Notes under the pieces: model-generated
The model's input: only the letters and a program-made list of their open reading frames with translations
Database searches by the model: none
Told to the model about the DNA's origin: nothing
Made by a program: the position numbers and the translations under genes
IMG/VR virus record: IMGVR_UViG_3300014720_000001
Span: 1-64,000 of that record
Reading direction: 5' to 3' (one strand)
Length of the DNA: 64,000 nucleotides
Shown here: one piece after another, positions 7,436-63,839 of the stretch
Numbering within the stretch: position 1 is the first letter of the stretch
Layout of the letters: each line of letters begins with the position of its first letter

Positions 7436-10069
7436 TTATCCGATGTCCCGGGCAAGGTCGGCGGCAGGTAGCAAATACTTATCGCACCAGTTGCTGTCGA
7501 CCAGAATACCCGGCAGGTTGCGCACAGCTTCCTCTCCGCCGAAAACTCCGCGACGCGCCAATAGTTTAACAAGCCAGAGCCAATTTGGGGCTAGGGCTTT
7601 TCTATCATAAAAATAGCGGTCGATCGCGCGCTGATTCAACCACCAGTGCGCGGTCTTTCTGACGAGGTAATTTCCGGGTTGATCTGCCCTGCGCGGTCGC
7701 GGTAACACAGCCAGCGCGCCGGTTTGTACGGCGGTCGTTAACTCAGCGAAAAACGCAGTATCTGCCGCGTCTGGCGTTGTTAAATGATTTGTAGCGTACT
7801 CCAGCTGGAACGCATCGCCGTATGTTTCTGCCAGCCACGCGTGCATGTCGGTTAACACTGCCAGCGTTGTCAGCGGGTTGGTCCGGCTGATCCGCATTCG
7901 CTGGCGCAAGGCGCGCTGCAGGTAGCCGGGCAGGACATACGCCAGCGCGCCAAAGTCTGTATCGGGCGCTGCGCTGCCGTGAATCACCTGCCAGCCATAG
8001 CTTGTCGCCACGTTGGCCGCAGTCGGCGACAGTTGCGCAAGCACCGCGCGGTTGTGGCAGCGCGGCACGGTCGGACTAAGGCTTGCGGCGTCGAATACGT
8101 TTGAGACAAATGTCGGCCACTCTAGTTCTGCCGTACGTTCGTACATAGCCGCGCTGGAGTCTGAACGGCGCAGCAGATCAATGCGTTTGTGCTGGCAGCC
8201 AAGCACCTCGCCAATCGCGGCGGCGGTCGCGAACCCGCCACCCGGGATCGCCGTCGCGACCGAGTCTCGCCGCAAAACTGGATCGATCAAGTCTGCTGCG
8301 ATCGTTGCGACGACAGACCAGATAAACGCGTTCTCTGCGGTTGGAGTAAGGAACTGGCGAATTGCTGGTGGCGCGACCGCTACCGGTTCAGGAAACGTAA
8401 CGTGTTTGTTTTTCGCGCTAGTTTGCGCTGCAATGGTCGGCGTGCCGTCGGTTGCCAGTTCGTAGTTAGCGAACCGGAACACTGCTGCGCGTTCGTCCCA
8501 GCCGAGGCGGTTTGATACGCACACCAGCTCGGGGCGGCTTAGATCGATGGCGATGAGGTGGCTGCGGCTGTTCCAGCGCCCGTCAAACATCATCACTTTT
8601 TTGTGAGACGCTACGATCCCTGCGCAGTACGCCAGCAAACCAGTGCGTTCGATTTTGGTAGCGCCGTCCGCAAAGTGAAGTTCGTCGCCGTCGAGGTAGA
8701 TCGTGCCGTGATACGTTTTTTCGCCGTCGTCGGCTTGGATGATCTTATTGATAACAATGTTCGCGGCGCAGATATGCTGGTTTGTTACGCTCCACCAACC
8801 GGACGCCTTGGGGATTACGGTCCGCTGCCACGGGCGCGACAAGCGCGGGACAATGTCGCGGCACGTTTTAACATTTGTTAGTACGCGGTCGGCAAACCCG
8901 GCCGAGAAGTTGCCGCTGATTTTTGTTAAAAACGGCGCCAGTTTATCTGGCATGATTGTGAGTCGGGTCGCAAATGAGTGTGCTGCTATTTCGTTCATTT
9001 GGGCAAGCGTGCTGCTCAGCCGCGTTTGCCACGTCTCGGCGTTTTTGCGGATCGACACCAGCCGGGTCATCGCGTCTGTAGCCAGCCGGTTTCGCATTCG
9101 TTGCGTCGGCGACACGATGGCCACATACCCGCGCGCAGCGGCAGCGCGGCTTATTAACTCTGGCGAGACTGTGTGACTTTGAAAGATTCTCGGGACCGGC
9201 GCAAATGCGTTCCAGCTGCCGCCGACGCTGTTCGCCTCGACGCCGGTGTAGCTCGCCATCACGGGCAGTAACGACAACCCGCGCCGCAGCATTTCGCACT
9301 GCATGGTCAGCGCCCACATCGGGTCGTCGAGAACGAACTGCGTGCTTTTTAGTGTCTCGGTGGACGGCAGCAACGCTGTGCGCAGCAAGAAGTACCCAGC
9401 CTCGACGCGGCCGCGTTTATATTGGCTTACGGCTAAGAAGTTTTGCTTAGTGTTAAACTCCTCGTCGTACTGGACCAGCAGGAAACCGGTTAGGCGCCCG
9501 GGTAGGTCGTAGTACGGAAACACAAGGCTGGCGCCGTTTTCACGCACCGCTCGGTATGGCGGGCGGCGTACAAATTTTTGTAGCGCGGTAATCTGTTCGC
9601 GGTACGCCACGCCGACCAGCCCGCCAGCGTTTATTTCAGCTTGAACGCCAAGCTCGCGCAGGCGGCAGGCAATAACGTCGTCGTGATGTCCCCAGATTTG
9701 CGATTCAGCCGCAAACCAAAACTGCTCAAATTTGTCAAAGCGTTCGGCTGCTCGGGCGTATTCGACGGCCGCGTTGTCTTTTTCCGCTGGATTTATCAGG
9801 TTTAATTCAACAAACCTGTCAATCGCGCCCTCAAGGCTTGTATTCCATAACGCCGCGCCAAACGTTATGATATCTCCATGGGCAAAGCACGAATTACAGT
9901 GCAGCCATATCCCGTTCGTGGTCGTATCGTCGAACAGGTGCAGCGTATTTTTTTGACATAGCGGACAGCCCACAACGGCTGGAAACAGCAGTTGATCCGG
10001 GGAAATGCCCAGCGCCGACAGGGCGATTGCGTGGTGTTGGCGGCCAATCAAACAGGTAGGAAATCCCAT
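7436..10069 (-). CDS. primase-like protein with N-terminal zinc finger
   Basis: CPLC...CNSCFAHGDII...SLEGAIDRF resembles the CHC2-type primase Zn domain; LVFPYYDLPGRLTGF resembles the DnaG core; no clear Toprim EG/DxD or Walker motifs. Confidence 0.6.
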   Translation of the reverse strand: MGFPTCLIGRQHHAIALSALGISPDQLLFPAVVGCPLCQKNTLHLFDDTTTNGIWLHCNSCFAHGDIITFGAALWNTSLEGAIDRFVELNLINPAEKDNAAVEYARAAERFDKFEQFWFAAESQIWGHHDDVIACRLRELGVQAEINAGGLVGVAYREQITALQKFVRRPPYRAVRENGASLVFPYYDLPGRLTGFLLVQYDEEFNTKQNFLAVSQYKRGRVEAGYFLLRTALLPSTETLKSTQFVLDDPMWALTMQCEMLRRGLSLLPVMASYTGVEANSVGGSWNAFAPVPRIFQSHTVSPELISRAAAARGYVAIVSPTQRMRNRLATDAMTRLVSIRKNAETWQTRLSSTLAQMNEIAAHSFATRLTIMPDKLAPFLTKISGNFSAGFADRVLTNVKTCRDIVPRLSRPWQRTVIPKASGWWSVTNQHICAANIVINKIIQADDGEKTYHGTIYLDGDELHFADGATKIERTGLLAYCAGIVASHKKVMMFDGRWNSRSHLIAIDLSRPELVCVSNRLGWDERAAVFRFANYELATDGTPTIAAQTSAKNKHVTFPEPVAVAPPAIRQFLTPTAENAFIWSVVATIAADLIDPVLRRDSVATAIPGGGFATAAAIGEVLGCQHKRIDLLRRSDSSAAMYERTAELEWPTFVSNVFDAASLSPTVPRCHNRAVLAQLSPTAANVATSYGWQVIHGSAAPDTDFGALAYVLPGYLQRALRQRMRISRTNPLTTLAVLTDMHAWLAETYGDAFQLEYATNHLTTPDAADTAFFAELTTAVQTGALAVLPRPRRADQPGNYLVRKTAHWWLNQRAIDRYFYDRKALAPNWLWLVKLLARRGVFGGEEAVRNLPGILVDSNWCDKYLLPAADLARDIG

Positions 10070-11249
10070 GACAAATATCCCGCTCGATCAGGCGCATGAC
10101 GTTAGTGGCCGTGAGACACACCGGCTCACCACCCTGTACCCGCAGCCTGATTTTGTTAAGAATGCCGCGCAAGACAGACTTAACGGAGCCGCGGATCTAC
10201 CACGCCATTTATACGCCGACCAGCGCCATAAACTTTATCCGTGTCATACCGCCCCTGCAACATGGATGTCCGCGCTTTTCTTTGCGGACAAGCAGGCGCA
10301 GTTCTCGCCCGACGACGCGGCGGTTATTAAGACTAGGATACACCAAGCGGCCGAGTATTTCGGTATTCGCGGTGCCGTGGCCGAGATGGAAGAGAAGGTT
10401 GCGGTCAGCGCCACGCAAGATATCAATACCCTGCCGGACTCTGAGTTTGCCGTCGTGTGGGTGGGCGAGGACGGCTCGAAAGAGCGCCACTGGCCGCTGC
10501 GCAACGCCGAAGAAGTCAAGTTTGCGGCGGCGCATTTCAAGGCTCACCGCGACGACTTCGTATTCGACGACCGACATGTAATCGCCACAAAGATCCTCGA
10601 AAAGGCTGCCCAGTACGGCGCAGATGTTTCGGGGGCTGAGGGCTCGCTGGAGCTGGCTGCCGGGCTTGGTGCCTGCGCCGCCAAGGTAGCGAGCGACATG
10701 ATCAAAGACCGCGTACGGCTTACCCGCCGGCAGCACGCGCAGCTGGCGGGCGAGTTGTCCAAGTTAGCCGAGGTTATCGACCAGAACCCGGAAAGGGCTC
10801 GTACGGTCGAGACACGGTTAAAGTTGGCGAGCGCGGTCGATAACTTCGATCGGAGCACGCAGCTCCATCGCCTGTACGACGCCGGCGGATTACCGCGGCC
10901 GGAAGAAGTCCTGTTTGCAATCACTGAAAAGGTGGCGCGGGACTTCATGTCGAGCAGTGTCGAAACCACTACGGGTAACGTATACGCGCTAGATGATCTG
11001 GAGAAGCTAGCGGTAGACGACGTGCGCGAATGGCTGGGTGACGACTTTGCGGACGCGGTAAGCGCCGGCGGCGTCTACATGGACCGCGAGAAGCTGGCCG
11101 CGATTGTGCCCACGCTCGATCGCGGCATAGCGTCTATGCTAGACCGGCTTATGCAGGAAAAGTCTGCTGCGCCGGTCGTGAAGTCAGCGTCGGCTTCTGA
11201 TAGCCTTCTTTCGCTTGCTCGCCTTCACGAGCTTGCGGCGGGCGGTTGA
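10068..11249 (+). CDS. K-x-A-rich protein with two DUF6582-like repeats; probable virion head protein
   Basis: SD GTAGGA before MTNIPL at 10068; DLPRHLYADQRHKLYP and TLPDSEFAV...RHWPLRNAEEVKFAAAHF resemble the recalled DUF6582 pattern. Confidence 0.7.
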   Translation: MTNIPLDQAHDVSGRETHRLTTLYPQPDFVKNAAQDRLNGAADLPRHLYADQRHKLYPCHTAPATWMSALFFADKQAQFSPDDAAVIKTRIHQAAEYFGIRGAVAEMEEKVAVSATQDINTLPDSEFAVVWVGEDGSKERHWPLRNAEEVKFAAAHFKAHRDDFVFDDRHVIATKILEKAAQYGADVSGAEGSLELAAGLGACAAKVASDMIKDRVRLTRRQHAQLAGELSKLAEVIDQNPERARTVETRLKLASAVDNFDRSTQLHRLYDAGGLPRPEEVLFAITEKVARDFMSSSVETTTGNVYALDDLEKLAVDDVREWLGDDFADAVSAGGVYMDREKLAAIVPTLDRGIASMLDRLMQEKSAAPVVKSASASDSLLSLARLHELAAGG

Positions 11250-11726
11250 CGCTTTCTTTTTTGGCTTACGCTTTTTAACCGGCGGATTGAACAGCGTTCG
11301 TATGCGCTTAAGTACGGCCGTATCGCTCGTCCGTTTGTATTGAACGTTGTCCCACGCCTGATCAAGATCTTTGGCGGGAATACCGCGTCGAGCCGACTCA
11401 AGATCGTGCGCCAAGCTGTAGGCCGGGTTGTGCCATTTGTAAGCGACGCCTTTGCCGCCTATCGCGTTGTTTAGCGCTTGGTTATCGGCAACCGACATCT
11501 CGTACACTTCTTGCGTGCGGCGGTCGATGATCATTTGCGCGCTGGCAACGATACCGAAAACGCGCAATTTTTTATCGACAACGCCTTCGTGAATTGCGTC
11601 GACGATGGCGGCGTTAGGGCCGTAGCAGTCCCAGCAAAAATCGACGACTTCTTGAATGCTGTAGTTGCACGCCCGGAAAAACTCAGCGATCCGCGCTACG
11701 CCGGCGTGGTCTATTTTGATGCTCAT
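11184..11726 (-). CDS. hypothetical protein with basic C-terminal tail
   Basis: SD AAAGGAG; C-terminus KKRKPKKKASTARRK. Confidence 0.75.
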   Translation of the reverse strand: MSIKIDHAGVARIAEFFRACNYSIQEVVDFCWDCYGPNAAIVDAIHEGVVDKKLRVFGIVASAQMIIDRRTQEVYEMSVADNQALNNAIGGKGVAYKWHNPAYSLAHDLESARRGIPAKDLDQAWDNVQYKRTSDTAVLKRIRTLFNPPVKKRKPKKKASTARRKLVKASKRKKAIRSRR

Positions 11727-11971
11727 TGGAAAACTAACTCCTTTAGCTTTGTAAGTAACCTGCGCATACTCCAGCGCGGAGTTGCGGTAACCGGCTGCGT
11801 ATGCGCAGTACCGGGTTCAACATTCTGCGACGAGAGCCCGCCCGTTTGTTCGTCTAATTCGCCGCGGCAGTATTCGAGATAGAGCTGCCAGTTGTCGTAA
11901 GAGTCTCGGTCTTCGGCTCGCTCGTATGGGATGTAGGGTGGGTTGTCTGGGACTCTGTCGTTCCAGCCCAT
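11723..11971 (-). CDS. hypothetical protein
   Basis: 4-nt overlap with the downstream gene; AAGGA SD; overlaps the csrA C-terminal tail. Confidence 0.55.
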   Translation of the reverse strand: MGWNDRVPDNPPYIPYERAEDRDSYDNWQLYLEYCRGELDEQTGGLSSQNVEPGTAHTQPVTATPRWSMRRLLTKLKELVFQ

Positions 11972-12144
11972 TGCTTTTTGTCCTTCTTTTTAGTGCCGTC
12001 GATTAACTCGCCGCGAACGATCGCTGTCGCTTTTGGCGCAGTTAATCCAATCTTGACTCGATCGCCTGTGATTCCCAAAACTTTCACAACGATTCCGTCG
12101 CCAATTACAACTTCCTGTTCTTTCTTCCTTGAGAGTACAAGCAT
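11854..12144 (-). CDS. csrA: carbon storage regulator CsrA/RsmA (RNA-binding translational regulator)
   Basis: MLVLSRKKEQEVVIGDGIVVKVLGITGDRVKIGLTAPKATAIVRGEL aligns along its length with E. coli CsrA, including the RNA-binding Arg equivalent to R44; extra low-complexity C-terminal tail. Confidence 0.93.
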   Translation of the reverse strand: MLVLSRKKEQEVVIGDGIVVKVLGITGDRVKIGLTAPKATAIVRGELIDGTKKKDKKQWAGTTESQTTHPTSHTSEPKTETLTTTGSSISNTAAAN

Positions 12145-12154
12145 CTTGTCACCA

Positions 12155-13560: not shown

Positions 13561-13962
13561 TCAGGCGTCGTCTGGCCTGTCTACAACAAACATTTCCGTC
13601 GGCTTGCCGTTGTCGAATCCGATTACGGCAAAGCACACGGGAGTGCGGCAGTCGATATCGAGCTTCTTCGCCGCGGCGTACCCGGCGCGGAAGCTCGTTT
13701 TATTTGCGGCTTCCATCGCCGCTTCTTTCGTTCTGAACAGGCCGACCGGTACGTCGTCCATCGTGTGCCGCCATATGACAAGGTAGCCGGTTAATCCCGG
13801 CGGGGCGACGCGGCCCGACTTGGTTTTCTGCGCAGCCAACGCAGACGCCCGCGCGACCCGCAGCTGTGCTGTCGACGCGGTTCCCGTCCACGGAAGCGGC
13901 CTGACAGCCGCCGTACTAGAGGCGCGCGGAGCGCGCCTCTTCTTTTGTGTTTTTGATTTCAT
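13561..13962 (-). CDS. hypothetical protein
   Basis: Likely start MKSKTQ at 13962, overlapping the upstream stop by 4 nt. Confidence 0.7.
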   Translation of the reverse strand: MKSKTQKKRRAPRASSTAAVRPLPWTGTASTAQLRVARASALAAQKTKSGRVAPPGLTGYLVIWRHTMDDVPVGLFRTKEAAMEAANKTSFRAGYAAAKKLDIDCRTPVCFAVIGFDNGKPTEMFVVDRPDDA

Positions 13963-14438
13963 TCCTCTGCTCCAAACTTGTCGATATGCGCCAGTCTGGC
14001 GCAATAGAACTCAGCCACAAGCCCGGCGACGTTGCCGAACCGTTTGACCATGTCCGGAATTACCTGCTCGTTAAACACGCGCAGAATAACTTTCCGAAAT
14101 TTGGCGATTGCCTCTTTTGTGTAGCCTTCTTCTCGCGCTTTCTCGGCGGCTTTGCGTATGTCCGCATTGCCGTCGAACTGCAGTTGAAGGTAGGCCGGAT
14201 TTACAAACTCAATGATGTGCCCGTAAACCTGCCGAACTTCGTAGGCGCACGGCACGTCAAAGACACCGCGGCCCGGCCAGCTCTCGCCGTTGACTTTTTC
14301 TTCTGACAGGTATCGTAGCTTCCCCAGCATCCAACCGAATGCCGACGCGTCATCATTTGGTTCAGCCATGACAAAGGCTGGTTTTGGCGCCGGCGGTTGC
14401 TTGTCAAGTTTTGTTGCAGATTTACTTTTACGCGCCAT
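13959..14438 (-). CDS. hypothetical protein
   Basis: 159-aa ORF with natural composition. Confidence 0.75.
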   Translation of the reverse strand: MARKSKSATKLDKQPPAPKPAFVMAEPNDDASAFGWMLGKLRYLSEEKVNGESWPGRGVFDVPCAYEVRQVYGHIIEFVNPAYLQLQFDGNADIRKAAEKAREEGYTKEAIAKFRKVILRVFNEQVIPDMVKRFGNVAGLVAEFYCARLAHIDKFGAEE

Positions 14439-14559: not shown

Positions 14560-14934
14560 TCAATCTCCGGCGGTGCAAGCAAGGTACGCATGATACTGCG
14601 CTATAGCCTCAATACGAGGATTAATCTCTCTAGTTACTGGCTCATCGTCCATAGTGGCCAGTTCGCCACGCAGCATAGCCGCGGTGTACTCGTTGTACAG
14701 CCGAGCCATGTGACCACGTAACCGTCGCGTGGTGCGTTTGAGCACGCATTCCTTCAGAAATGCAGCTCGTTCCCAGAAGTTCGCAATCTTTCCCAATTCA
14801 TCAGCGAACTTCTCTGCCGTCTTCTCGAACAGAAGATGCGCCTTGTCAGATACGATCTGAAAAGCCGGTGCCGTCTTCTGGCATCGAGTAGTGACAGCGA
14901 GGCGGATAGACTCCGCTGGGGCCGAAAGAGACAT
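14560..14934 (-). CDS. hypothetical protein, possibly a head protein
   Basis: SD inside an ACGGAG hairpin; KTA, KTA and KIA motifs. Confidence 0.7.
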   Translation of the reverse strand: MSLSAPAESIRLAVTTRCQKTAPAFQIVSDKAHLLFEKTAEKFADELGKIANFWERAAFLKECVLKRTTRRLRGHMARLYNEYTAAMLRGELATMDDEPVTREINPRIEAIAQYHAYLACTAGD

Positions 14935-17042: not shown

Positions 17043-22800
<5,758 letters not shown>

Positions 22801-49219: not shown

Positions 49220-52200
49220 TTAGACCACTAAGTGCAGCTCAATGTTGTTGAGCGGCGCCGGGACAGTCAGATCAAGCACAATCTCGATGCGATCCTTGAG
49301 CAGCGGATGAATCTGCAGCTTGCGGATTTCGCCATCAATGAGTTGCGAGCCCAGTTCCTCGGTATTACCGTTGCCCTTAAGGAAATCGATAATCGCCGTG
49401 ACTTCGTACTCTAACCGGCTGACCATACCCGGCTGCGCGTTGGTGCGGCCGATGTAGGGCTTCAGGCGACGGTAGAACAGGTACGACATGCTGTCGACGT
49501 TACGACGAATCATTTCTTCGCGACGGTTCAGATCGAGATTGTCGGTCGTCAAGGCGTGACGCGTATGCGGCGTGCCGTCCTTGTCTTCCGTCACAATCCA
49601 GACGCCGGCCTCGGCCATGCGGTTAAGCTGGGTTTCGTTGAGGTACTTGTAGGAACGCGAGAAATCATCGAAACCGGCAACCTCGACGTTCGTCAGCGGC
49701 TGGTGGGGCACCACGCCGGAGACGAGACCGGCCAGAGCGGCCGCAAGGTAGTAACCGGGCTGGATAGTGCCGGCTTCGCCGACCTGATCCGGCCACACGG
49801 CGCACACGCGACGGTTCGAGAGCGAACCACCCTGCTGCGCGACGTCTTCAACAATTTCGTTGCGGTTACGGTTATGCCAGACTTCGACGCGCTGCGGAAC
49901 TGTGACAGCGGCGTCAGCGCCGGAGTACAGCAGCAGGGTCGATTCCGAAATAACCTGATCCACAACGTACTCTTCGTACTGCTCTTCACCGAAGCCGTCC
50001 ACCGAGTAGTTGTAGCGCACGATATCGCCGGGGCGCACTTCATTTGTGATGAAGTACCCATTGCCCGACGTTACCGTCAGCTTCGTGTACTGCGTGTTGG
50101 TTGCGTTCGGGTCGTCGGCCAGCGTGGCAAGAACCGGGTCATTGACCGTCTCACCAAGCACACCGGCGATGTTTACGCCTTCACCAACAACCTGCGCGAC
50201 CGGTTGCGCCTTGAGGGCGAAGAAGCCGGCCTTCCAGTTGTTCGCGTACTCATTCGACTCGGCGCCGATGTGCGCGGCCCACAGGTTTTGAATCCTGCGG
50301 TCGAACGTCATCGGAACGAGGTTATACATGTCATCGCGGCCCTTGATGCGCTCAAGCACCTGTACCCACTTGTCCATGTCAGGCCCGAGCGAACGACCTT
50401 CTTCGTCGTACTTCTCGGGGTCAGCTACCGCTGTGTACTTCACCACGGTACCGTTGCTGTTGGAGAGCGCCTTGTAGACGCCCCACTTCAGCGGGTTATC
50501 GGGATCGAGCTGACCCTTGATGTTGTCGAGATCGGCAACGTCGCTGATCGAGTTGACCTGATCGGCCAGCTCAGACAGCCACTCGCGATACTCGACGTAC
50601 ACCTTGCCGGAGAGAACCGGCAGCGGTTGCTCAGCGCCGGCGCTCGTCCACTCGGGGTGGTAAGCGACGATGCCTTCCTGCACGCAGATTTGGGTGTCTT
50701 CAAACCAGAAGTTGGTCATCGGCGCAAATCCGATCCGATTCTTCGAAATCTGGATGTCGTCCTTGATGAACAACTTGAGGTCCATATCTTCGCCGCTGAT
50801 CAGCTGGCAGGTAGCCGTCGCCAACACCTTGCCAGCACCGGTACCCGGCGAGGCAATAGTTACCGTCGGCGCAACTGTGTAACCTGCGCCGCGGTTAGTC
50901 ACGGTGATCGCCACTACCTTGCCGGCGTTGTCGCCGGTGCCGAGCACGGCAACGCCCGTGGCAGTTTGATTCTGCACGAGGTTACCGGTCGGGGCCGAAA
51001 ACGTAACAGTCGGCACAGTGGTGTAACCCGAACCAGCGTTTGTGATGCTGACAGGACCAACCTTGTCGATCGGCGCGCCGTCTTGGGCAAGCAACACCGT
51101 CGGAAGGTCGTCGCGCAGGATGAGCTTGCGCACCGGACCAGCCTTGCTGGAGTTAACAGTGATGTACCACTTGTCGCCCTTGCGAAGACCAGCGACCGCG
51201 TCAGGGTTGTCGCCAGACGTGCCGATGAACTTAACCTTTACGCCGTTCGTGCCGATCGACACGCCGACCGCGTTCAAGCCAACACCGTCGCCAGTGACTT
51301 CGGTCGGGCCAGAGAAGTCGAGACCCTTGACCGTGCGCACAGTGATCTCGGGGAGTTGATCCCACGTGCCACCCTTGGTGCACTCGATGACGTAGGTGTC
51401 GTTCTTGGCGCCAACGTACTTGCCAAGGATGTCAACCGCGCCGCTGACACCGTTCACAGACTCTTCAGTCTGGTACGGGCCGTCAGCGTCAGAAACAGCC
51501 TTGACCTTTTCGTAGGTCTGCTTGACGTCAAACTTCCACTTCTGGCCGACGGCAAACGTGTCATTGCCGGAGGTTGTGAAACGCACCGAAAGACCGCGCG
51601 TACCGATGAAGGTCACGCCGTCGTTGTCGTCAAAATCGTTCGGCTGAATCTCGGCCTGATCGTCAGTGCCGCTGGCCGAAACAACACGCAGACGGGCAGC
51701 GTTGCAACCCGAAATGGTGCTCTTGATGACTTCAACAACGTACTCTTCTTCAACAGCGCCAGAAACGAGACCGTCATAGTCGTTCGCGCCCTCGTCTTCA
51801 GCGGTCAGAACAGTTACGGCGACGGCGTTATCGACGCCCTCGATTTGCGTAACAGTTACGTCGACGCCGTTTTCAGCGTCAGCTGCGTAGCTGTCCTGAT
51901 TGTTAACGTCCGAAACTGCCGGCAGGATACGCGACGGAACAAGGTCGCTGGCGAAACCGGTTACATACGTCTCAAGCACAGTCTCGATGCAGTCGTTGTC
52001 GGCACTCACAGTGCGGAGCTGAACAACGTCACCGAGCTGCACGTCGCGATCGGCGAACGCGCTTGACCGCGGGTACGCGGCACCGTTCGACTTGAACGAC
52101 AGCGTGCTGGACTGAATCCAGTTCGTCTTGCCGGGCACAGCTGTAATAGTTGTGTCGCCTTCGCCCATGTTGTGCGCGTAGTAACGCAGCATGGCATCGT

Positions 52201-52447
52201 CGACGTACAGCTTGACGTACGGCAGATCGACAACCGAGCCGGCTTTACGCTGCGGCCACGGATAGCACGTGTCGTTGAGACGGTCGTACTGACCGAGAAG
52301 ACAGAACTTCTTCTCGTCGGTATTGCTATAGCGATGAAGAACAGCGTGCGGGCCAGCGATGTGGGCGCGCAGCGGCTCCGTGATCTCCGTGGGGACGATA
52401 CGGAACTCTTGGAAAACGAGAACTTGTGGTTTTACGTAGCTCGACAT
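49220..52447 (-). CDS. tail sheath protein (1075 aa)
   Basis: C-terminal sheath domain (RRVCAVWP...YLAAALAGLVSG...PLTN...RHALTT...IRRNVDSMSY...IEIVLDLTVPAPLNNIEL). Confidence 0.9.
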   Translation of the reverse strand: MSSYVKPQVLVFQEFRIVPTEITEPLRAHIAGPHAVLHRYSNTDEKKFCLLGQYDRLNDTCYPWPQRKAGSVVDLPYVKLYVDDAMLRYYAHNMGEGDTTITAVPGKTNWIQSSTLSFKSNGAAYPRSSAFADRDVQLGDVVQLRTVSADNDCIETVLETYVTGFASDLVPSRILPAVSDVNNQDSYAADAENGVDVTVTQIEGVDNAVAVTVLTAEDEGANDYDGLVSGAVEEEYVVEVIKSTISGCNAARLRVVSASGTDDQAEIQPNDFDDNDGVTFIGTRGLSVRFTTSGNDTFAVGQKWKFDVKQTYEKVKAVSDADGPYQTEESVNGVSGAVDILGKYVGAKNDTYVIECTKGGTWDQLPEITVRTVKGLDFSGPTEVTGDGVGLNAVGVSIGTNGVKVKFIGTSGDNPDAVAGLRKGDKWYITVNSSKAGPVRKLILRDDLPTVLLAQDGAPIDKVGPVSITNAGSGYTTVPTVTFSAPTGNLVQNQTATGVAVLGTGDNAGKVVAITVTNRGAGYTVAPTVTIASPGTGAGKVLATATCQLISGEDMDLKLFIKDDIQISKNRIGFAPMTNFWFEDTQICVQEGIVAYHPEWTSAGAEQPLPVLSGKVYVEYREWLSELADQVNSISDVADLDNIKGQLDPDNPLKWGVYKALSNSNGTVVKYTAVADPEKYDEEGRSLGPDMDKWVQVLERIKGRDDMYNLVPMTFDRRIQNLWAAHIGAESNEYANNWKAGFFALKAQPVAQVVGEGVNIAGVLGETVNDPVLATLADDPNATNTQYTKLTVTSGNGYFITNEVRPGDIVRYNYSVDGFGEEQYEEYVVDQVISESTLLLYSGADAAVTVPQRVEVWHNRNRNEIVEDVAQQGGSLSNRRVCAVWPDQVGEAGTIQPGYYLAAALAGLVSGVVPHQPLTNVEVAGFDDFSRSYKYLNETQLNRMAEAGVWIVTEDKDGTPHTRHALTTDNLDLNRREEMIRRNVDSMSYLFYRRLKPYIGRTNAQPGMVSRLEYEVTAIIDFLKGNGNTEELGSQLIDGEIRKLQIHPLLKDRIEIVLDLTVPAPLNNIELHLVV

Positions 52448-56185: not shown

Positions 56186-56575
56186 TCAGGATGCGCTTTG
56201 CAGAGCCGCGGCAGCAGCAGCCTGCAGCGTCAGAACCGCCTGCGCAATCGCAGGTTGCTCCGCCGCTACGCTCGCCACATCGCCGTAAGCAGCCGCCTTT
56301 TCACCAGTGCCGCCGAGGCCCGCGGCGGCAAGCATCTCGTCCAACTGCTTGTTAGCAGTCGAGAGCGAGGATGCTTGCGCGGCCGCGACCTTTTCTTGCT
56401 CCGCCGTGTAGAGCACATGAAGCTTGGAAGCAGCAGCCCACATTTCTGCGGCTTCGCCTTCCGAGCGCGGCTGGATGCCGTGCGCGGCAAGCTTCTCGAA
56501 GAAATACGGCGCGGCAAGTTCCGACACGATTGTGGCGTAAGCTTGCTCAGCCGCTTCTTTAACATTATCAGACAT
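56186..56575 (-). CDS. Ala-rich head cluster protein
   Basis: AAAGGAG SD; KEA, KLA, KVA and KAA motifs. Confidence 0.78.
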   Translation of the reverse strand: MSDNVKEAAEQAYATIVSELAAPYFFEKLAAHGIQPRSEGEAAEMWAAASKLHVLYTAEQEKVAAAQASSLSTANKQLDEMLAAAGLGGTGEKAAAYGDVASVAAEQPAIAQAVLTLQAAAAAALQSAS

Positions 56576-56609: not shown

Positions 56610-57536
56610 TCACTTGAAGTTAACGCGAGCCAGACCGTTGGTATGGCCGAACGAGCCACCCGAAGTCTGGTAGGCGAAGTACTCAAGCATGTAAGCCTCA
56701 CGACGGATGTACATCGTGGTGGGCTCCAGCTCGTAGTTCTTGCCGATGAACTTCGGCGACGCAAACATGAACAGCGAGTCATCGGGGACAAGATCGCGCT
56801 TGATCGTGACGATCCAGCGGCAGTTGAGGAAGTTCGTCTCCGCCCAACCGTTCTTGATGATGTCCTGCGAGAAATCACCACCCATCTCGTCGCGACCGAA
56901 CTTGAGGAGTTCCTTGATCGTGATGTTATTCACGAGGCAGGTTTCAACCTCGAAGTGCGACGGCGTCCGGGGCATGACCTTCAGCGCGTCAACAAGGGTC
57001 TCACGGGTGATGCCGCCCGAGATCTCCTCGTACTGCACAACGCCGCTGGCGACGTTGGCAACACCCGGAGTCGGGAGCACGGCGTTGAAGGCGGCAATGA
57101 ACTTGCCGTCCTCTTCCGCCAGCATGTCCTTGATCATGTTGTCGCTGAGGACCTGACGGATGTCGATCACGTACGTACGCAGCTCGTCGACGTCCTTCAC
57201 AGCGCGGGGCGACACGATCCGGTCAAACATGACGCGGTAGCGCGGGCCACGGATGTAGAAGTTAATCGGGAGCGTCGCAAACGGGAGCGACACAGCCGCC
57301 GGGGAATCGGGCTCCTTGTCCACCACCTTGACGGGCTTGTCAGTATCAACCTGACGGTCAAGCTCGTCGTTGGTGATGGTCAGCGGCGGCATAATCCGCC
57401 GGTAGAACCCGTCTTCACGCATCTTGGTGCGCGTGAAGTCGTTAACCGCATCAATGGCCTGCTTCTGCATGCCGGGGGTATCAAGCTGCTCAAAAAGCGT
57501 TTCGTTGAGCAGTTGGATCTCTTGCTGAGTGGGCAT
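56610..57536 (-). CDS. major capsid protein (HK97 fold)
   Basis: RTKMREDGFYRRIMPP...IKDMLAEEDGKFI pattern; biased, highly expressed codon usage; start MPTQQ at 57536 behind GGAGG; order protease-scaffold-decoration-MCP. Confidence 0.85.
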   Translation of the reverse strand: MPTQQEIQLLNETLFEQLDTPGMQKQAIDAVNDFTRTKMREDGFYRRIMPPLTITNDELDRQVDTDKPVKVVDKEPDSPAAVSLPFATLPINFYIRGPRYRVMFDRIVSPRAVKDVDELRTYVIDIRQVLSDNMIKDMLAEEDGKFIAAFNAVLPTPGVANVASGVVQYEEISGGITRETLVDALKVMPRTPSHFEVETCLVNNITIKELLKFGRDEMGGDFSQDIIKNGWAETNFLNCRWIVTIKRDLVPDDSLFMFASPKFIGKNYELEPTTMYIRREAYMLEYFAYQTSGGSFGHTNGLARVNFK

Positions 57537-57540
57537 TGTG

Positions 57541-57556
57541 GGAACCTCCATGTTCC
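57541..57556 (-). promoter_or_regulatory. MCP RBS hairpin GGAAC[ATGGAG]GTTCC (CsrA-type site)
   Basis: Perfect 5-bp stem with AUGGAG hexaloop containing the SD; a second GGA lies in the 5' arm. Confidence 0.65.
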
Positions 57557-57575
57557 TTATTTAGTTAGGGATAGG

Positions 57576-58154
57576 TCAGTCGATTGTCGCCGCGGTGCCC
57601 GCCGGCAGGTACACGCACCAGAAGGAGAGTGTATCCACACCATTGTGGTTCTTGGCCGCGCCGCTAGAAACAACACCGCAAACCGGGTTTACGTACTGCA
57701 CGGCGTTGGCCTTCGTCAGCACGCCCTCAACAGCAGCGCCGCCGCTGGTGGGAGCAGTCAGAAGGTCACCCGGAGCATACGTGACAGCGCTGCCGCCGGA
57801 CGTCTTCACGTACTCGGTGGTAGCGATTTCATAACCACCGGTCGCAACAAGACCCGACAGCTTGCCCGAGGGCGAAACCGCTTGGTGCATGAAGTTACCG
57901 GCCGCTGTGGTACCCGGATTGCTGACGTCAGCATCGGTCGAACCGTTCAGCAGGAAGATCGCGACGCCCGTGGCGCTGACGCCCGGAACGAACACGTCCT
58001 TGCCGCCCTCTTTCGAGAGGTGCACAACGCGACCGCGCGGAACATCATACGTGACTGTGCTCAGCAGCTTGGCCGAGTAGTCGAGGGACGCCATATCGAA
58101 CCAGCCCTTTTTGACGTCAAGGCCGTGTTCAAACATAAGATCAGGAGCAGGCAT
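57576..58154 (-). CDS. capsid decoration/cement protein
   Basis: 192 aa, beta-rich (GLVATGGYEIAT...YAPGDLLTA...GVLT), directly before MCP as lambda D is. Confidence 0.6.
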   Translation of the reverse strand: MPAPDLMFEHGLDVKKGWFDMASLDYSAKLLSTVTYDVPRGRVVHLSKEGGKDVFVPGVSATGVAIFLLNGSTDADVSNPGTTAAGNFMHQAVSPSGKLSGLVATGGYEIATTEYVKTSGGSAVTYAPGDLLTAPTSGGAAVEGVLTKANAVQYVNPVCGVVSSGAAKNHNGVDTLSFWCVYLPAGTAATID

Positions 58155-58158
58155 TGGT

Positions 58159-58172
58159 AGACCTCCGTGTCT
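58159..58172 (-). promoter_or_regulatory. RBS hairpin AGAC[ACGGAG]GTCT (CsrA-type site)
   Basis: Perfect 4-bp stem with ACGGAG loop. Confidence 0.62.
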
Positions 58173-58208: not shown

Positions 58209-58634
58209 TCAGGTAGTGGGCGGGTTAAGACCAAGGCCCGTAAACAGCTTTACGTCGGAAGCCTTGAGGCGACCATCGCGGGCACCCACATACCCGCTCG
58301 TCAGACTGGCTGTCGGGTCGTAGCTGGCGGTCTTTGTGGCCACCGGCGTACCAAGACGAGCCATTTCAGCTGCGTTTTTATGCGCAGCTAATTTGATAAC
58401 AAGTTCCATCGTGCGCACCGGGTCTTGAAGGGCGGCAGCAAGCGCCTCCTTCTGGTGCGACTCGATCCGCTCGTTCTCCACGCACGCCTTGACGGCTTCG
58501 GGGATCAGGTGGGCCAGCTTTTCGCTGGTTTCAACCTGCGCCTTTTCGGCGGCGGCGGCTTTGGTCATCGCGGCATCGGAGTAACCGATGTAGTCGATGA
58601 TCTTCTGTACGAGCGCGTTATTCTGAGTAGACAT
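58209..58634 (-). CDS. head cluster protein
   Basis: ACACGGAGGT SD; several K-x-A motifs. Confidence 0.78.
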   Translation of the reverse strand: MSTQNNALVQKIIDYIGYSDAAMTKAAAAEKAQVETSEKLAHLIPEAVKACVENERIESHQKEALAAALQDPVRTMELVIKLAAHKNAAEMARLGTPVATKTASYDPTASLTSGYVGARDGRLKASDVKLFTGLGLNPPTT

Positions 58635-58650
58635 TAAAACCTCCGTGTGA

Positions 58651-59994
58651 TCAACGATTCACGAGTTCGATGACGTGCTGCTTCATCATGTCCCGCAGCT
58701 GGCGCGAACGCTTTGTGCGGGCTTCTTTGACTTGAAACTTGCCAGCACGCTTAAAGTTTACAACAGCGCGGCCGATGGCGTCTAAATCTTTAGCAGCTGC
58801 CATCTTCGGCTCTTCCACCGGCGGCACGGCCGCTTCCGGAGCAGCGCCGGCTTCCGGCGGCAGACTGCCTTCAGCGCCACCACCCTGCGCACCGGACAGC
58901 GCTTGCAGCAGCGCTTCCGGCGGAATGCCAAGTTCTTCAAGCGCCATCGCCAGCTCTTGAACAGCCTCGTCTTCCGACGGCTCGCCGGCAGCTTCGGGCG
59001 CCGGGCCACCTTCTGCGCCCATCAGGGCCTCAAGGCCGGCGGGAGCAGCTTCGGGGGCGGGCGCGTCGCTCATACCGGAAGCAGCATCTTCGGGCGCGGA
59101 GTGATCTTCGCCTTCCGTGGCTTCTTCGGTCGGATCGGCCGCGGCGGCCTTCGAGTTCAGGAAGCCGATGAACAGGTCGGCCATCTCGTCAGCTTCACGA
59201 ATGGTGTTCGCACACACTTCGCGAACCGAGGCTTCAGCCGCTTCTTTGTTTAAGCCAAGTTGCGCGGCCAGTTCGTAGCCAGCTTTGAACGCGGCAGCCT
59301 TACCCTCGCGAAGAGCGGCGAGATCAGAACCTTCGATCTTGCCATTGTCGTTTACATCGAGCTTGTGCTGGTCGCCTTTCAGGTTGCTGCCGGCGTGCTC
59401 GCTTTTCTCTTCAGCGGGGGTCTCTTTTTTTTCTTCGGCCTTTTCCTTCAAAAAAGCCGGCAGCTCAGCGGCCTTCTCGTTGGTCAGCTTGTTGGCGCCA
59501 AAGTTAATGAGGTTGGCAAGAATATCGTTGCCCAGCTCGCCAGCGCGTTCGCGGGCTTGCTTGAACGTTACCGAGCTGTACTTCTCGCCGTCATTAGCCT
59601 TAACCGGCGACGAGGTGCCCGGGTCGTCTTTGTCGCCTTTGAAGTCTTTTTCGTTGGCCGGATCTTCGCCGGTCGCCTTGGCCGACACGCCGATGTTCGT
59701 CTGCACGTCGTCTTGACGACCTTCTTGCGACAGCTCCGGTGTGTTGTCTACAGCGAGAGCGCCCTGCTGCTTCTTGATGTCCGATTCGTACTCGCTGGCG
59801 CGCGCACCGGTGCTGGCGTTCTGCACACCGTTGTCGGCGCTGGTTGTCGGGTGCGAAGAAGCGCCCTGATATCCACCCGGATCAGAGGGCACGGGACCGG
59901 CAGACTTTTCAGCCGCAGTCTTAACGGGGCTCTGCGCAATCTCGGCGGCGAGAGCGTTGAGTTGATCGAACAGTGAACGTTGCATCCGTGCCAT
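58651..59994 (-). CDS. capsid scaffold-like protein
   Basis: Low-complexity A/E/P/D-rich sequence between protease and MCP; many K-x-A motifs; AAAGGAG SD. Confidence 0.65.
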   Translation of the reverse strand: MARMQRSLFDQLNALAAEIAQSPVKTAAEKSAGPVPSDPGGYQGASSHPTTSADNGVQNASTGARASEYESDIKKQQGALAVDNTPELSQEGRQDDVQTNIGVSAKATGEDPANEKDFKGDKDDPGTSSPVKANDGEKYSSVTFKQARERAGELGNDILANLINFGANKLTNEKAAELPAFLKEKAEEKKETPAEEKSEHAGSNLKGDQHKLDVNDNGKIEGSDLAALREGKAAAFKAGYELAAQLGLNKEAAEASVREVCANTIREADEMADLFIGFLNSKAAAADPTEEATEGEDHSAPEDAASGMSDAPAPEAAPAGLEALMGAEGGPAPEAAGEPSEDEAVQELAMALEELGIPPEALLQALSGAQGGGAEGSLPPEAGAAPEAAVPPVEEPKMAAAKDLDAIGRAVVNFKRAGKFQVKEARTKRSRQLRDMMKQHVIELVNR

Positions 59995-60037
59995 GACTTT
60001 CTCCTTTGGGGTCTAACCGTTTCCGATTAGCTTCCGT

Positions 60038-61495
60038 TCATGTGACATAATTTTGCATTACACAGTGGTTGGCTGTCAACCAATTGTTTCCGTATTTCTC
60101 GCAGATAGTAGCGAAGGCAGCGATCTTATACAACGCGTAGTGTTGCGCAAGAGCTGTTTCTGCTTTGCCACTTGCTTGCGTGTCAGACGGAAACTCCATT
60201 GCCCGCACGTTACGAAGAGCAGCTAAATATGCGCGTTTCTCAACGTTAACGGGTAATACGCTATGTGTGTGAGCCAACTTCTCAGCCCACACGCGCACGC
60301 TAGGCGGCGCAGAGTCAGCTGGGAAGTACACATTGTTCTCAAGTAGCCCAACTACGTCAACGTCGTTTGCTAACTTTGAGAACACGTTAGGCAGAGCATA
60401 CGCAACTGCACTAACAAGTGTGGCGTTAGCTGACTTAACTGTCAACGCCAAAAAATCTCGCAAGGGCAAGATTACTCCGGCGTCTGCTAGTCCGCGTAAC
60501 ACCTCCGCCATTTTAACAGATGGCGCGCTGTTTGTATCAAGAGGGGGTTGTACTTCTTCAGACCCGGCGAGAGCTGCTTGCGCCCAGTTACCGCGAGCGC
60601 CTGCATCCTTCTCCGCCTGCACAAGCTGGGTTAACGCCTCTAACTGTGACTGAACGCGCGCCCCGGGTGTGCGGCCTAAGTCGAAACCAAGCGGAGCGGT
60701 AATACCTAGTTGCTCGGCTAGTTCGGCGCCAGAAACACAGGTGGCAGACGCGGCTTTCTGCAGCTGGCCAGACACGTACGCAATACGGTCAGCCGGACGG
60801 AAAACGTGGCTGATATCAAAAAACGTCGGGTTTGGATTATCGGCGTGCAGTACGTGGCCGTCTTCGAGCACCCGGCCCATGTTGTGCTTTAACCCGCCCG
60901 CCTTGCAGTGGCCGCCGTTTTCAACCGAGTCGCAGTATTCCGCGCGGGTCTTGGCCGAGTTACCGCAGGACGAGCACTTGTCGAACGGGATCTTGCAGGC
61001 CATCGACACGGCAATCTCTTTATCGTTGGCTAGCTTTTCCAGTTCCTTGTCCGCAATGAGGCCGCCGTTTCGGTCCGCCGCTTCTTTCGAGCCGTTCAGC
61101 GCCACGACCAGCTCGATTCGCTTCATGGGCTCGTGGTAGGCACTGGCCTTTACAATCCCGAAGCTTTTGGCCGGGTTCTTATTGGCATGGTCGCGGTAAA
61201 AGCGCGCAAACTTCTCGAACGTCTGGTGGTAGTTACGGCAGCAGTCGCGGGTAAAGCCGTCACCGTTGCGGTTCGGGCCGTAGTCTTCCGTGGCGCCGAT
61301 CGCGATCATGTGAACCGGCACTTCGTCTTTGGCAAACTTGATGTTTTCGAGCTTGTGGGCAAACTCAGCCCCGGCGCGCTTAACGAGTTCTTGCTTGTCG
61401 GCGCCGATGATGCCGCGGCTAGATACTTTAATCAGAGCAGCAACGGGCTCGCTAAAGTCTTGGGCGTGCGGCTGAATAACCTTGATCATGCTCAT
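60038..61495 (-). CDS. prohead (capsid maturation) protease, assemblin/HK97-type fold with Zn finger
   Basis: NRNGDGF...RDHANKNPAKSFG...VSM...CSSCG...C...C...NPNPTFFDISHVFRPADRIA matches large-phage prohead proteases as recalled. Confidence 0.75.
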   Translation of the reverse strand: MSMIKVIQPHAQDFSEPVAALIKVSSRGIIGADKQELVKRAGAEFAHKLENIKFAKDEVPVHMIAIGATEDYGPNRNGDGFTRDCCRNYHQTFEKFARFYRDHANKNPAKSFGIVKASAYHEPMKRIELVVALNGSKEAADRNGGLIADKELEKLANDKEIAVSMACKIPFDKCSSCGNSAKTRAEYCDSVENGGHCKAGGLKHNMGRVLEDGHVLHADNPNPTFFDISHVFRPADRIAYVSGQLQKAASATCVSGAELAEQLGITAPLGFDLGRTPGARVQSQLEALTQLVQAEKDAGARGNWAQAALAGSEEVQPPLDTNSAPSVKMAEVLRGLADAGVILPLRDFLALTVKSANATLVSAVAYALPNVFSKLANDVDVVGLLENNVYFPADSAPPSVRVWAEKLAHTHSVLPVNVEKRAYLAALRNVRAMEFPSDTQASGKAETALAQHYALYKIAAFATICEKYGNNWLTANHCVMQNYVT

Positions 61496-61497
61496 GT

Positions 61498-62463
61498 TTA
61501 CTCTCCCGCGGACGAGCCGCCCAAGCTGTTAAGAAGCGCCGGGACACCGAGCGCGCCAAGGACGGGAAGACCGATGCCGGCCAGTCTGCCGCCAACACGC
61601 GGTAGTTTACGCAGCGCAGCTTGCAGCTGTTGACCGGTTAAACGTCGGCCCGCGGTGCCGACGCCAGACGCCGGCTCCGACGCGATTGCGGCGAGTACGT
61701 TCGCGGTATCGTCGGCACCGCGGCCAAGTATACCGCCAAGAAAATCGCCGCGGGCGGCGCGGGCCGCGTTTTGTACGCGCCCAGCTACGCTTGCCGGCGT
61801 ATTAATTTTTGCTTCTTCGAACGGAAGGCTGACGTCACGATTAACGCGGTCTGTACCAAAAATACCGCTTAAAAGTCGATTACGTGTAAACGGCGCAAAC
61901 GGCGTTTTTCGCACATGCTGTGTCAAGTTATCTGTAATTTTCGACGCGCCGCTGTTTGCCCGCAGTTGTTCAATTGTTGGTCGCAGTTGTTTAACGACCG
62001 GATCATCAGACTCAAGCAGTCGGTTCAGTTTGCCGTACGCGTCGATAGAGTTGGCAACTTGTCGGCCACCGTACGCGCCGGCTCCGGCGCCAGCCAGATT
62101 AAACAGCGCATTACTTGACGACCCGTCTTGATTCTTTACGGCAGCAATCGCGGGTGGCGGAGCCGTTTTTGTAAGCAGCATGTTCTTAGCCGCGGTTGCA
62201 CCGAGGCCGCCGATGCCGCCCATGAGCGCGTAGTCCAACACGGCACGCCGTTTTTTCTTTCCTTGTAGCGCACCAATCAACCCGCCTGCGCCAGCACCGA
62301 TAGCGGCGTTTTGGAGATACGGGTTGCTAAGCACCTGCGAAAGATCAGCTTGCTTCGTTAGCGCAGTGGTCACCGCAGCCACCTTCTCAACCGCCGCGTC
62401 GGGGGTGCGGGTTGCGATAGCCGATAAACCGCGCGCTAATTCTTGTGCGTCAGTTGTATTCAT
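61498..62463 (-). CDS. glycine-zipper protein, putative internal/ejection protein
   Basis: GAGAGGLIG, GGIGGLG, GAGAGAYGG and GIGLPVLGALG segments; KVAA and KQA near the N-terminus. Confidence 0.6.
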   Translation of the reverse strand: MNTTDAQELARGLSAIATRTPDAAVEKVAAVTTALTKQADLSQVLSNPYLQNAAIGAGAGGLIGALQGKKKRRAVLDYALMGGIGGLGATAAKNMLLTKTAPPPAIAAVKNQDGSSSNALFNLAGAGAGAYGGRQVANSIDAYGKLNRLLESDDPVVKQLRPTIEQLRANSGASKITDNLTQHVRKTPFAPFTRNRLLSGIFGTDRVNRDVSLPFEEAKINTPASVAGRVQNAARAARGDFLGGILGRGADDTANVLAAIASEPASGVGTAGRRLTGQQLQAALRKLPRVGGRLAGIGLPVLGALGVPALLNSLGGSSAGE

Positions 62464-62465
62464 GA

Positions 62466-63839
62466 TTACAGCAACTCACGAGCTTTTTGCTGCGCTTCGA
62501 GATTACTCTTTATGCTCTCGGCGCGGATCTTTTCCATTTCAATCAGCTGCTTGATATCAAAATCGGCGAGTTGGCCGGCTTCTAACCGTTTTCGCAACAG
62601 CGCCTGCATCGCGGCGCCCGAGCCGGTGAAGTTCGGCGCAATTTCGGCGATCTGGTTGTATGCGGAAGCTACCTCGTGCGGGTCGTAGCCGGAGATAACC
62701 GGGTCGTTCAGAATAAGATCGTTCAGCACGCCACGCGATTTGATTTGCTGTAGTTTGTTTTCGTGCTCCGCGTCGGACATGCGCATAAACGCTTTTTGTT
62801 TTTGCTTAGTCGGGTCATTGGCCTTGCCAGCTTCCGTGTCCATTTCTCCGGCTAGACCCGCTGGGCTCATCAGTTTGCCGAGATGGCCCATCGTACCGCT
62901 ATAGGATGTCAGGGGCGGGGCCGAGTCTTGTTTTTTTTTAACCGCCGCCACCTTTAAAGCTAGCGGCGCGGTTTTGGGGTCGTGAAGGATTGAGCCGGTT
63001 ACGGGTGTCGGAGCCGCTTTCTTTTCGTCTGCCGGCGCCGCGAATGCCGCAAGCTTATTCTGTGCGTCGTTATGCAGTTCTACCGCTTTGATAACGTTCT
63101 CTACCAACGTCACAACGGGCAGATTACCGAAGTAATCCTGCTTTGTGGTGGCCTGTTTTGTGAAGTGCGGGTAAACCGCTGCAATTTTATTAAGGGTTGA
63201 CGCGCCCATGTCGCCGAGCCGTAAACCAACTTCGCGCACAGCGTCGTTAAACGACATGTGACCCGGAACGCGGAAATACTGGGCCAGCTCTTCCATTGCG
63301 CTTGCCGCTTTGTGGTGCGCAACCGTAGCCTGCCGGCGCGTCTCTTCCATAGCCTGCTTGGCGGCTTGTTTCTGGCTGTATGTACGCATGACCGCTGAGT
63401 GCTCATCGCGGGGCGGCGGGGTGTACGTCTTTTCTGGTAATACACTCTTGGCGGCGGCCGCTTTGTTTAATGCGGCGTTGCGGCGGGATATAAACCCAGT
63501 TGGCGACACCGCGTACTCGGTTGATATAACGCTGTTTTGCGTTAGCTCGGCCGACGTCTTTACATGTTTTGGATACAACGCGTTCATAACAACGTCTGCA
63601 TCTGCCAGCTGAAAGTCGGCAGCTTTCTCAAGCGTCGTCTCGCCTAGCTCGCGCTGCTTATTGGTGCGGCCAGTGTTATAGGCGTGCACCATAAGATTGA
63701 TGTGCCCGGCCGGGATATTGGCGTCCGACGCGCTTTTGATAATTGCAGCGTTAGGTGTCTCGCCGCCGTTAACCAACGTCGCAGCGCGCTCGATGGCGCT
63801 TAACAGCTTTTGCTCAGCTTTTTTACTTAGTGCCCGCAT
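62466..63839 (-). CDS. K-x-A-rich head cluster protein
   Basis: 457 aa helical protein with about a dozen K-x-A(A/S) motifs. Confidence 0.75.
   Translation of the reverse strand: MRALSKKAEQKLLSAIERAATLVNGGETPNAAIIKSASDANIPAGHINLMVHAYNTGRTNKQRELGETTLEKAADFQLADADVVMNALYPKHVKTSAELTQNSVISTEYAVSPTGFISRRNAALNKAAAAKSVLPEKTYTPPPRDEHSAVMRTYSQKQAAKQAMEETRRQATVAHHKAASAMEELAQYFRVPGHMSFNDAVREVGLRLGDMGASTLNKIAAVYPHFTKQATTKQDYFGNLPVVTLVENVIKAVELHNDAQNKLAAFAAPADEKKAAPTPVTGSILHDPKTAPLALKVAAVKKKQDSAPPLTSYSGTMGHLGKLMSPAGLAGEMDTEAGKANDPTKQKQKAFMRMSDAEHENKLQQIKSRGVLNDLILNDPVISGYDPHEVASAYNQIAEIAPNFTGSGAAMQALLRKRLEAGQLADFDIKQLIEMEKIRAESIKSNLEAQQKARELL

Follow-up and report, generated by a model that had tools for sequence, protein, structure and literature searches.

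In large phages, motif-coded proteolysis removes the scaffold from the head and processes the internal head proteins. Proteases of the assemblin/gp21 fold read a P3-x-P1 motif, which is L/I-x-E in T4, S/A/G-x-E in phiKZ and V/L-x-A in herpesviruses. To our knowledge, the few such codes described are those of T4, phiKZ/SPN3US and the herpesviruses. In phiKZ and SPN3US, a single motif is shared by many head proteins, some of which are encoded at a distance from the head module (PMC5694885, PMC10052503). We analysed a stretch of 64,000 nucleotides (hereafter the window) from IMG/VR record IMGVR_UViG_3300014720_000001, which covers the first 64 kb of one 204,621-bp contig. The gene at 60038..61495 on the minus strand encodes a putative prohead serine protease, and the tripeptide K-x-A is in excess in its product, in several neighbouring head proteins and in the product of a distant gene at 10068..11249 (genes are named here by their lower coordinate). 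We propose, with a probability of roughly 0.68, that K-x-A, or in its wider form [L/F]-[E]-K-x-A-[A/S], is the recognition motif of the 60038 protease, with Lys at P3, Ala at P1 and the cut after the Ala. The best-supported conclusion is that this is a new specificity of a known kind of prohead protease, in a very large sequence family that carries no protease annotation in the libraries.

A preliminary description of this DNA, made from the letters, had named the 60038 product as an assemblin-fold protease, and structural modelling bears this out. The AlphaFold2 model, with 46 relatives in the alignment, reached a predicted local distance difference test score (pLDDT) of 87.5. Comparison with VIA-align gave T4 gp21 (5jbl) as the best structural match (Z 10.2, 142 of 165 residues), followed by the proteases of varicella-zoster virus (VZV, Z 8.5) and human cytomegalovirus (HCMV, Z 6.1). 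These matches cover model residues 16-246 and stand well above the next unrelated rows. Many of the matches in BFVD are named prohead or head-maturation proteases. A Foldseek search of the PDB with the full model returned no match because the helical C-terminal domain dominated the search. Sequence libraries were silent on function: the Pfam scan gave no protease match, the only PHROG match was phrog_2774, of unknown function, and a profile search of PDB sequences found nothing. As judged from the model, the 60038 product has the T4 gp21/herpes assemblin fold, and its family is a distinct sequence family within that fold. The protein is organised as follows.

60785..61453, minus strand: catalytic domain, residues 15-237.
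61187..61189, minus strand: His103, invariant.
61004..61006, minus strand: Ser164, invariant.
60977..60908, minus strand: four-Cys zinc-ribbon insert (C174, C177, C188, C197) inside the catalytic domain, invariant.
60737..60784, minus strand: disordered linker, residues 238-253 (pLDDT below 50), with K247-A-A249 at 60749..60757.
60041..60736, minus strand: helical C-terminal domain, residues 254-485, seven K-x-A.

His103, Ser164 and the four Cys are invariant in the 46 sequences (38-53% identity). The His, the Ser and the zinc-ribbon Cys also align in the proteases of a more divergent viral locus (L036), Salmonella phage Arash (gp222), Bacillus phage G (gp19) and mycobacteriophage Catera (gp94). 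Inteins occur in 33 of 150 family representatives, at four sites near residues 74, 103, 167 and 174, beside invariant residues. Some of them have LAGLIDADG endonuclease domains and two proteins hold two inteins each, whereas the window gene has none. Inteins next to invariant residues are typical of active-site motifs.

The protease gene lies within a minus-strand head module that spans about 67.6 to 55.8 kb, in the order 65163, 64770, 63823, 62466, 61498, the protease 60038, a scaffold-like gene 58651, 58209, 57576, the major capsid protein (MCP) gene 56610, 56186 and 55846. The protease is thus placed between portal-side genes and the scaffold and MCP, as in gp21-type systems. A megablast of the module against phage records returned no match, and Pfam and PHROG scans of the head proteins and the 10068 protein gave none that was informative. 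The following proteins bear on the motif; expected counts were computed per protein from its own Lys and Ala content.

65163..67580, minus strand: 805-aa homologue of the Arash structural protein gp218, just outside the window.
62466..63839, minus strand: 457-aa head-module protein, 14 K-x-A against 5.9 expected.
60038..61495, minus strand: 485-aa prohead protease with C-terminal helical domain, 13 K-x-A against 4.5 expected.
58651..59994, minus strand: scaffold-like protein of 447 aa, acidic and of low complexity, encoded between protease and MCP, 10 K-x-A against 5.7 expected.
58209..58634, minus strand: 141-aa head-module protein, six conserved K-x-A against 2.0 expected.
56610..57551, minus strand: MCP, one K-x-A (MQKQAI), its K-Q-A at 57456..57464.
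56186..56575, minus strand: 129-aa Ala-rich head-module protein, four conserved K-x-A against 1.8 expected.
49220..52447, minus strand: sheath, no K-x-A among 46 Lys, 3.7 expected.
10068..11249, plus strand: 393-aa protein of otherwise unassigned function, 13 K-x-A against 2.9 expected.

The preliminary description had counted K-x-A by hand and had set the motif-rich head proteins against a sheath without it. All of its counts were reproduced, including the quoted scaffold motifs (PVKTAA, EKSAG, NEKAA, GKAAA, NKEAA, SKAAA and PKMAA) and the empty sheath, and the excess persists after correction for composition. Among the 227 proteins of the genome, the four with the greatest excess are the 10068, 60038, 62466 and 58209 products. 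Over the whole genome there is no excess (288 observed, 306 expected), and the proteins outside the head set are slightly depleted (216 against 276). Within the head set, which includes the products of 10068 and 14560..14934, Lys followed two residues later by Ala ranked first of 1600 gapped residue pairs at spacings 1-4 (85 against 41.8, p 3e-9). The excess held without the non-conserved 14560 product (76 against 35.9) and in the contiguous head module without 10068 (63 against 33.0, p 2e-6). All other Lys-to-Ala offsets from -6 to +8 gave ratios of 0.5-1.15 in the head set.

None of the related patterns tested in the head set was enriched, whether R-x-A, K-x-S, K-x-G or A-x-A. The same was true of the known codes: [LI]-x-E of the T4 type (37 against 32.6 expected), [SAG]-x-E of the phiKZ type (79 against 72.1) and [VL]-x-A of the herpes type (85 against 88.5). 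The residue that follows K-x-A is Ala 2.4-fold and Ser 1.9-fold more often than background, and Glu is over-represented directly before the motif Lys, which gives the wider consensus stated above. We considered a T4-like cleavage after this Glu and rejected it, as no more than 22 of the 80 sites have the Glu, and in the MCPs this position is Gln or Val. A motif acting at the DNA level was likewise rejected, as codon choice within K-x-A equals the choice outside it and genes of both strands carry the motif; its effect is thus on the protein. As a positive control, we ran the same gapped-pair scan on the T4 head module, where the top pairs in the core proteins were I-x-E and L-x-E, the known gp21 motif. 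An enrichment of this sort can therefore be taken as a valid sign of such a cleavage code.

The orthologue sets came from two scans of viral contigs, mostly about 200 kb long, which yielded 36 loci for the protease and 22 for the 10068 gene; the metagenomic phages compared numbered 20-35. Pooled over nine families, the motif Lys was kept in 92% of cases against 78% for other Lys, and the motif Ala in 90% against 74% for other Ala. The middle residue was often conserved below the protein average, with values of 0.50-0.56 in 58651, 62466, 65163 and 56186. When a motif Ala was lost, it was replaced by Ser 40% of the time, compared with 17% for other Ala. In the scaffold-like 58651 product, the motif Lys and Ala are 99% and 94% conserved, other Lys and Ala 81% and 69%, and the x between them 56%, and several of its motifs sit inside hypervariable Pro/Ala/Gly-rich stretches and are retained there across orthologues. 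By these sequence comparisons, K-x-A acts like a short linear motif under selection, both in the head proteins and across the protease family.

The position of some copies bears on where the protease would act. In the 60038 protein, LQKAAS occupies residues 245-250, in the disordered linker, and the linker column has K-x-A in 32 of the 46 family members. A post-domain L-[QEM]-K-x-A-[SN] is aligned in the window protein, L036, Arash and phage G, and Catera has K-T-A about six residues later. A second K-x-A, ahead of the catalytic core (K39), is aligned in four of five divergent members, Catera being the one without it. On the model, we predict that K247-A-A249 is the site at which the protease releases itself. 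The motifs of the 62466 product are confined, with all 14 within residues 1-298 and none in the conserved C-terminal 159 residues.

The single motif of the MCP lies near its N-terminus. The open reading frame (ORF) has two in-frame Met codons (57551 and 57536); the second is preceded by GGAGG at a distance of 8 nt, and in some orthologues no in-frame start codon lies further upstream, so the MCP is probably 308 rather than 313 aa long. Numbered from the Met at 57536, the motif is K25-Q26-A27. Every orthologue retains it, as do the MCPs of L036 and Arash (24-30% identity; 28% for Arash). The predicted propeptide would be 27 aa long, and the mature protein would start at Ile.

The nearest experimental data come from phage G, whose MCP, gp27, has 282 aa and a mature form of 255 aa by N-terminal sequencing (PMC5646251). 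From the sequence and the published lengths, we placed its cut after Ala27 (VALA27|Q28), and the masses computed for the two forms match the published 31.2 and 28.2 kDa. In a multiple alignment of MCPs, the phage G cut falls within one residue of the cut predicted here after the aligned K-Q-A. This establishes experimentally that P1 is Ala in a homologous protease-MCP pair. A literature search for N-terminal data on capsids of Bxz1-type mycobacteriophages found none. We place the cut after the Ala, which fits the disorder of the linker site, the excess of Ala or Ser at the next position and the cut of the phage G MCP after Ala27.

An exhaustive search gave relatives of the 60038 product in 2613 clusters at 50% identity, and the motif spreads with them. 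In 112 representatives from different 50% clusters, K-x-A occurs 13.0 times on average where 3.5 would be expected, and the ratios at offsets 1, 3 and 4 are 0.8-1.3. The L036 protease has 11 K-x-A against 2.7, and five of its neighbouring genes are enriched (p 0.0006-0.04). K-x-A is also enriched in Arash gp220, gp222, gp223 and gp225, in phage G gp19 and gp21, and in Catera gp94 (18 against 8.3 expected). The catalytic domains of phage G gp19, Arash gp222 and Catera gp94 are 30-38% identical to that of the 60038 product. Phage G gp19 has been called a head maturation protease (PMC12484599) and has no product name in GenBank; the Arash and Catera homologues are annotated only as "structural" or "hypothetical". 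The GenBank records and papers that we found on phage G, Arash and Catera describe no cleavage motif for this protease family. The virion-proteome paper on Arash lists 116 "structural" proteins and did not analyse cleavage (PMC10585845); so many proteins make the list non-discriminating. In Bxz1-type mycobacteriophages, the protease domain lies at the N-terminus of a 1369-aa protein (Catera gp94) that is annotated as hypothetical, and the capsid protease of this cluster appears to have been unannotated so far.

Outside the head module, the 10068 protein stands out. Its gene lies about 47 kb from the module on the opposite strand, and 13 of its 19 Lys have Ala at +2 (binomial p 2.7e-7), which places it first of the 227 proteins. 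Among 22 orthologues, its motif Lys and Ala are 96% and 97% conserved, compared with 77% for its other Lys and other Ala, and one site is displaced by one residue in orthologues with K-x-A still present. The 13 sites are evenly spaced (P 0.0003 against random sites and 0.0085 against a random choice among its lysines), with predicted fragments of 7-44 aa, or 14 peptides if all sites were cut. This is the spacing expected for complete disposal. Its model is mostly helical (pLDDT 64), and its fold matches and look-alikes are unnamed viral proteins. Two weak DUF6582-like repeats were seen at the N-terminus (E 4e-4, below the Pfam cut-off); a literature search found no paper that mentions DUF6582, and tblastn against cultured phages found no homologue. 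From its motifs and their conservation, the 10068 protein is likely a distant substrate of the protease.

The preliminary description had extended this idea of capsid cargo encoded far from the head module to 14560..14934 as well. That part found no support: the four K-x-A of 14560..14934 are not better conserved in orthologues than the rest of the protein, and those of 13959..14438 are likewise no better conserved than their surroundings. The start codons of 10068..11249 on the plus strand and of 7436..10069 on the minus strand overlap in the palindrome CATG at window positions 10067..10070. This leaves no intergenic room for divergent promoters, and the true start of the 877-aa minus-strand gene may be internal.

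We propose the following course of maturation. In the procapsid, the protease would first free itself from its C-terminal helical domain at K247-A-A249, and probably also shed an N-terminal propeptide at K39-R-A41. It would then remove the 27-residue propeptide from the MCP. In a third step, it would cut 58651, the N-terminal 298 residues of 62466, 58209, 56186 and finally itself into peptides mostly shorter than about 50 residues, a few reaching about 115, and the shell would be cleared for DNA. T4 gp21 and HK97 gp4 are likewise broken up. The 62466 protein would lose its N-terminal 298 residues as small pieces and keep the conserved C-terminal fragment of 159 residues. As a fourth step, the 10068 protein would be a further substrate and yield 14 peptides of 7-44 residues.

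The fold, the selected motif, the linker site, the Ala or Ser that follows and the phage G cut lend indirect support to the view of the preliminary description that the 60038 protease cuts after K-x-A. Several points weigh against it. Cutting by this protease, the use of most copies of the motif and the entry of the 10068 protein into the prohead are steps that we infer, the last of them from the motif, its sole link to capsids. The phage G MCP has Ala at P3, which shows that Lys there is not a strict requirement across the family. His103 and Ser164 were assigned as catalytic by their invariance and the intein positions, not by residue-by-residue superposition. Several motif copies lie buried in confidently folded helices of the catalytic domain (K95, which is invariant, K137 and K154); on the model, such copies may be conserved for structure and never cut. 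A peptide of MCP residues 18-45, docked to the catalytic domain, gave no answer and forms no part of the evidence.

The most probable alternative, although we consider it unlikely and not supported here, is that K-x-A serves in docking or capsid targeting, the latter also named in the preliminary description. The repeated Lys elements would recruit cargo by binding to the C-terminal domain of the protease, to the scaffold or to the inner surface of the capsid, and cleavage, if any, would happen elsewhere. The presence of the motif in all candidate internal head proteins, the many copies in helices and the Glu excess before the Lys, which could suit recognition of a charge pattern, would fit such a role. 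Yet the best-placed copies lie at domain boundaries and in disordered linkers, and the replacement of Ala mainly by Ser suggests a P1 pocket for small residues. In addition, the phage G MCP is cut, by experiment, after Ala at the equivalent position, and the T4 scan shows that enrichment of this kind marks cleavage motifs.

We give little credence to the idea that the cuts are real but are made by another enzyme with a preference for small P1 residues, either from the host or a second phage protease. The A-L-A|Q of phage G does resemble the A-x-A sites of Ser/Lys-dyad peptidases, and the link between protease and substrates rests on sequence and model. But A-x-A is not enriched here, the protease carries K-x-A at its own domain boundaries, and the motif co-varies with the protease family across hosts in Proteobacteria, Bacillus relatives and Mycobacterium. 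Nor do we find it at all probable that K-x-A marks Lys residues that are covalently modified or cross-linked during head maturation by isopeptide formation, acylation or methylation. HK97-type capsids use Lys cross-links, and the invariant element here is a Lys in a fixed local context. Against this, Pfam and PHROG scans showed no modifying enzyme adjoining the head module, the motif tracks the protease family itself and is concentrated in proteins expected to be removed rather than kept, and the phage G data show a cut and not a modification.

A functionless by-product of Ala/Lys-rich helical or low-complexity composition is largely refuted: the enriched proteins are indeed Ala-rich (15-30% Ala) and largely helical, and T4 head proteins show a mild K-x-A excess (25 against 16.7), but expectations were set per protein, the excess is confined to offset +2, neither R-x-A nor K-x-S nor A-x-A shows one, K and A are preferentially kept around a variable x even in hypervariable linkers, and the excess is present in the 112 family representatives.

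Taking recognition of K-x-A by the 60038 protease as our reading, a wider version can be put forward tentatively, with the odds somewhat against it. K-x-A|(A/S) would be the general code of the whole family of about 2,600 clusters, from uncultured 200-kb phages to Arash, phage G and the Bxz1-type phages, and the 10068 protein would be a new kind of fully disposable head-core protein, encoded on the minority strand outside the head module. In that case, sequence alone could suffice to predict internal head proteins.

A gene call based on codon usage predicted 227 genes in the genome, 223 of them on the minus strand. The four plus-strand genes are the large terminase, 10068..11249 and two small ORFs near 106.5-107.4 kb.

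1110..3035, plus strand: large terminase, with the Pfam domain GpA_ATPase.

Two long plus-strand ORFs, 56643..58160 (505 aa, opposite the MCP and 57576) and 49556..52066 (836 aa, opposite the sheath), were rejected as genes; their codon-position GC pattern is that of shadow frames and we regard them as antisense shadows. Beyond the window, 67638..69518 of the genome (L060:3838-5718) adjoins the head module and encodes a fragment resembling the beta-prime subunit of multisubunit RNA polymerase (Pfam Rpb1 domain 5). K-x-A is not in excess in this fragment, and its Arash homologue, gp216, is abundant in virions (PMC10585845). Long collagen-like Gly-x-y repeats occur in 17043..18008, 18010..22800 and genome 125371..127731, which presumably encode fibre proteins, and outside the head set no residue pair was more enriched than Gly followed three residues later by Gly. 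The gene at 4647..6065 encodes a 472-aa protein with a T5orf172/MUG113 domain at its C-terminus.

If the 60038 protease does read K-x-A, head cargo and mature protein ends would become predictable in thousands of uncultured large phages and in well-studied mycobacteriophages. The motif would also give a direct handle on the chemistry of the S3 and S1 pockets of the assemblin fold, through Lys and Ala. The code can be tested at once with cultured phages and existing mass spectrometry data.

Among known systems, T4 gp21 (5JBL) is the best structural match. There too the gene sits in the head module, and many copies of a P3-x-P1 motif are spread over the scaffold and core proteins, the N-terminus of the MCP and the protease. 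The 60038 product has no detectable sequence similarity to gp21 (no Pfam or PDB sequence match), carries a zinc-ribbon insert and a helical C-terminal domain of 230 residues, and would take Ala instead of Glu at P1 and Lys instead of Leu or Ile at P3. The herpesvirus assemblins (VZV, 1VZV; HCMV, 8J3S) share the fold (Z 8.5 and 6.1). The Ala at P1 of their V/L-x-A|S code would recur here if the cut follows the Ala, a residue fixed by the definition of the motif, and the excess of Ala and Ser at the next position would suit that code; the cut after Ala is shown for the phage G MCP only. The predicted release site of the 60038 product, in the linker that joins the protease domain to a scaffold-like C-terminal domain, resembles the release site of assemblin and also the self-processing of gp21. 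The assemblins differ in having a hydrophobic P3 instead of Lys and two or three sites instead of dozens, and they belong to eukaryotic viruses, not phages.

Like phiKZ (gp175) and SPN3US (gp245), this is a jumbo phage with a virion-type multisubunit RNA polymerase gene adjoining the head module; the S/A/G-x-E code of those phages is not enriched here and their protease belongs to a different sequence family. The closest relatives in sequence are phage G gp19, Arash gp222 and Catera gp94, with aligned His, Ser and zinc ribbon and a K-x-A excess in the protease and its neighbours, although lengths and C-terminal extensions vary widely among them, from 300 aa in phage G to 1369 aa in Catera.

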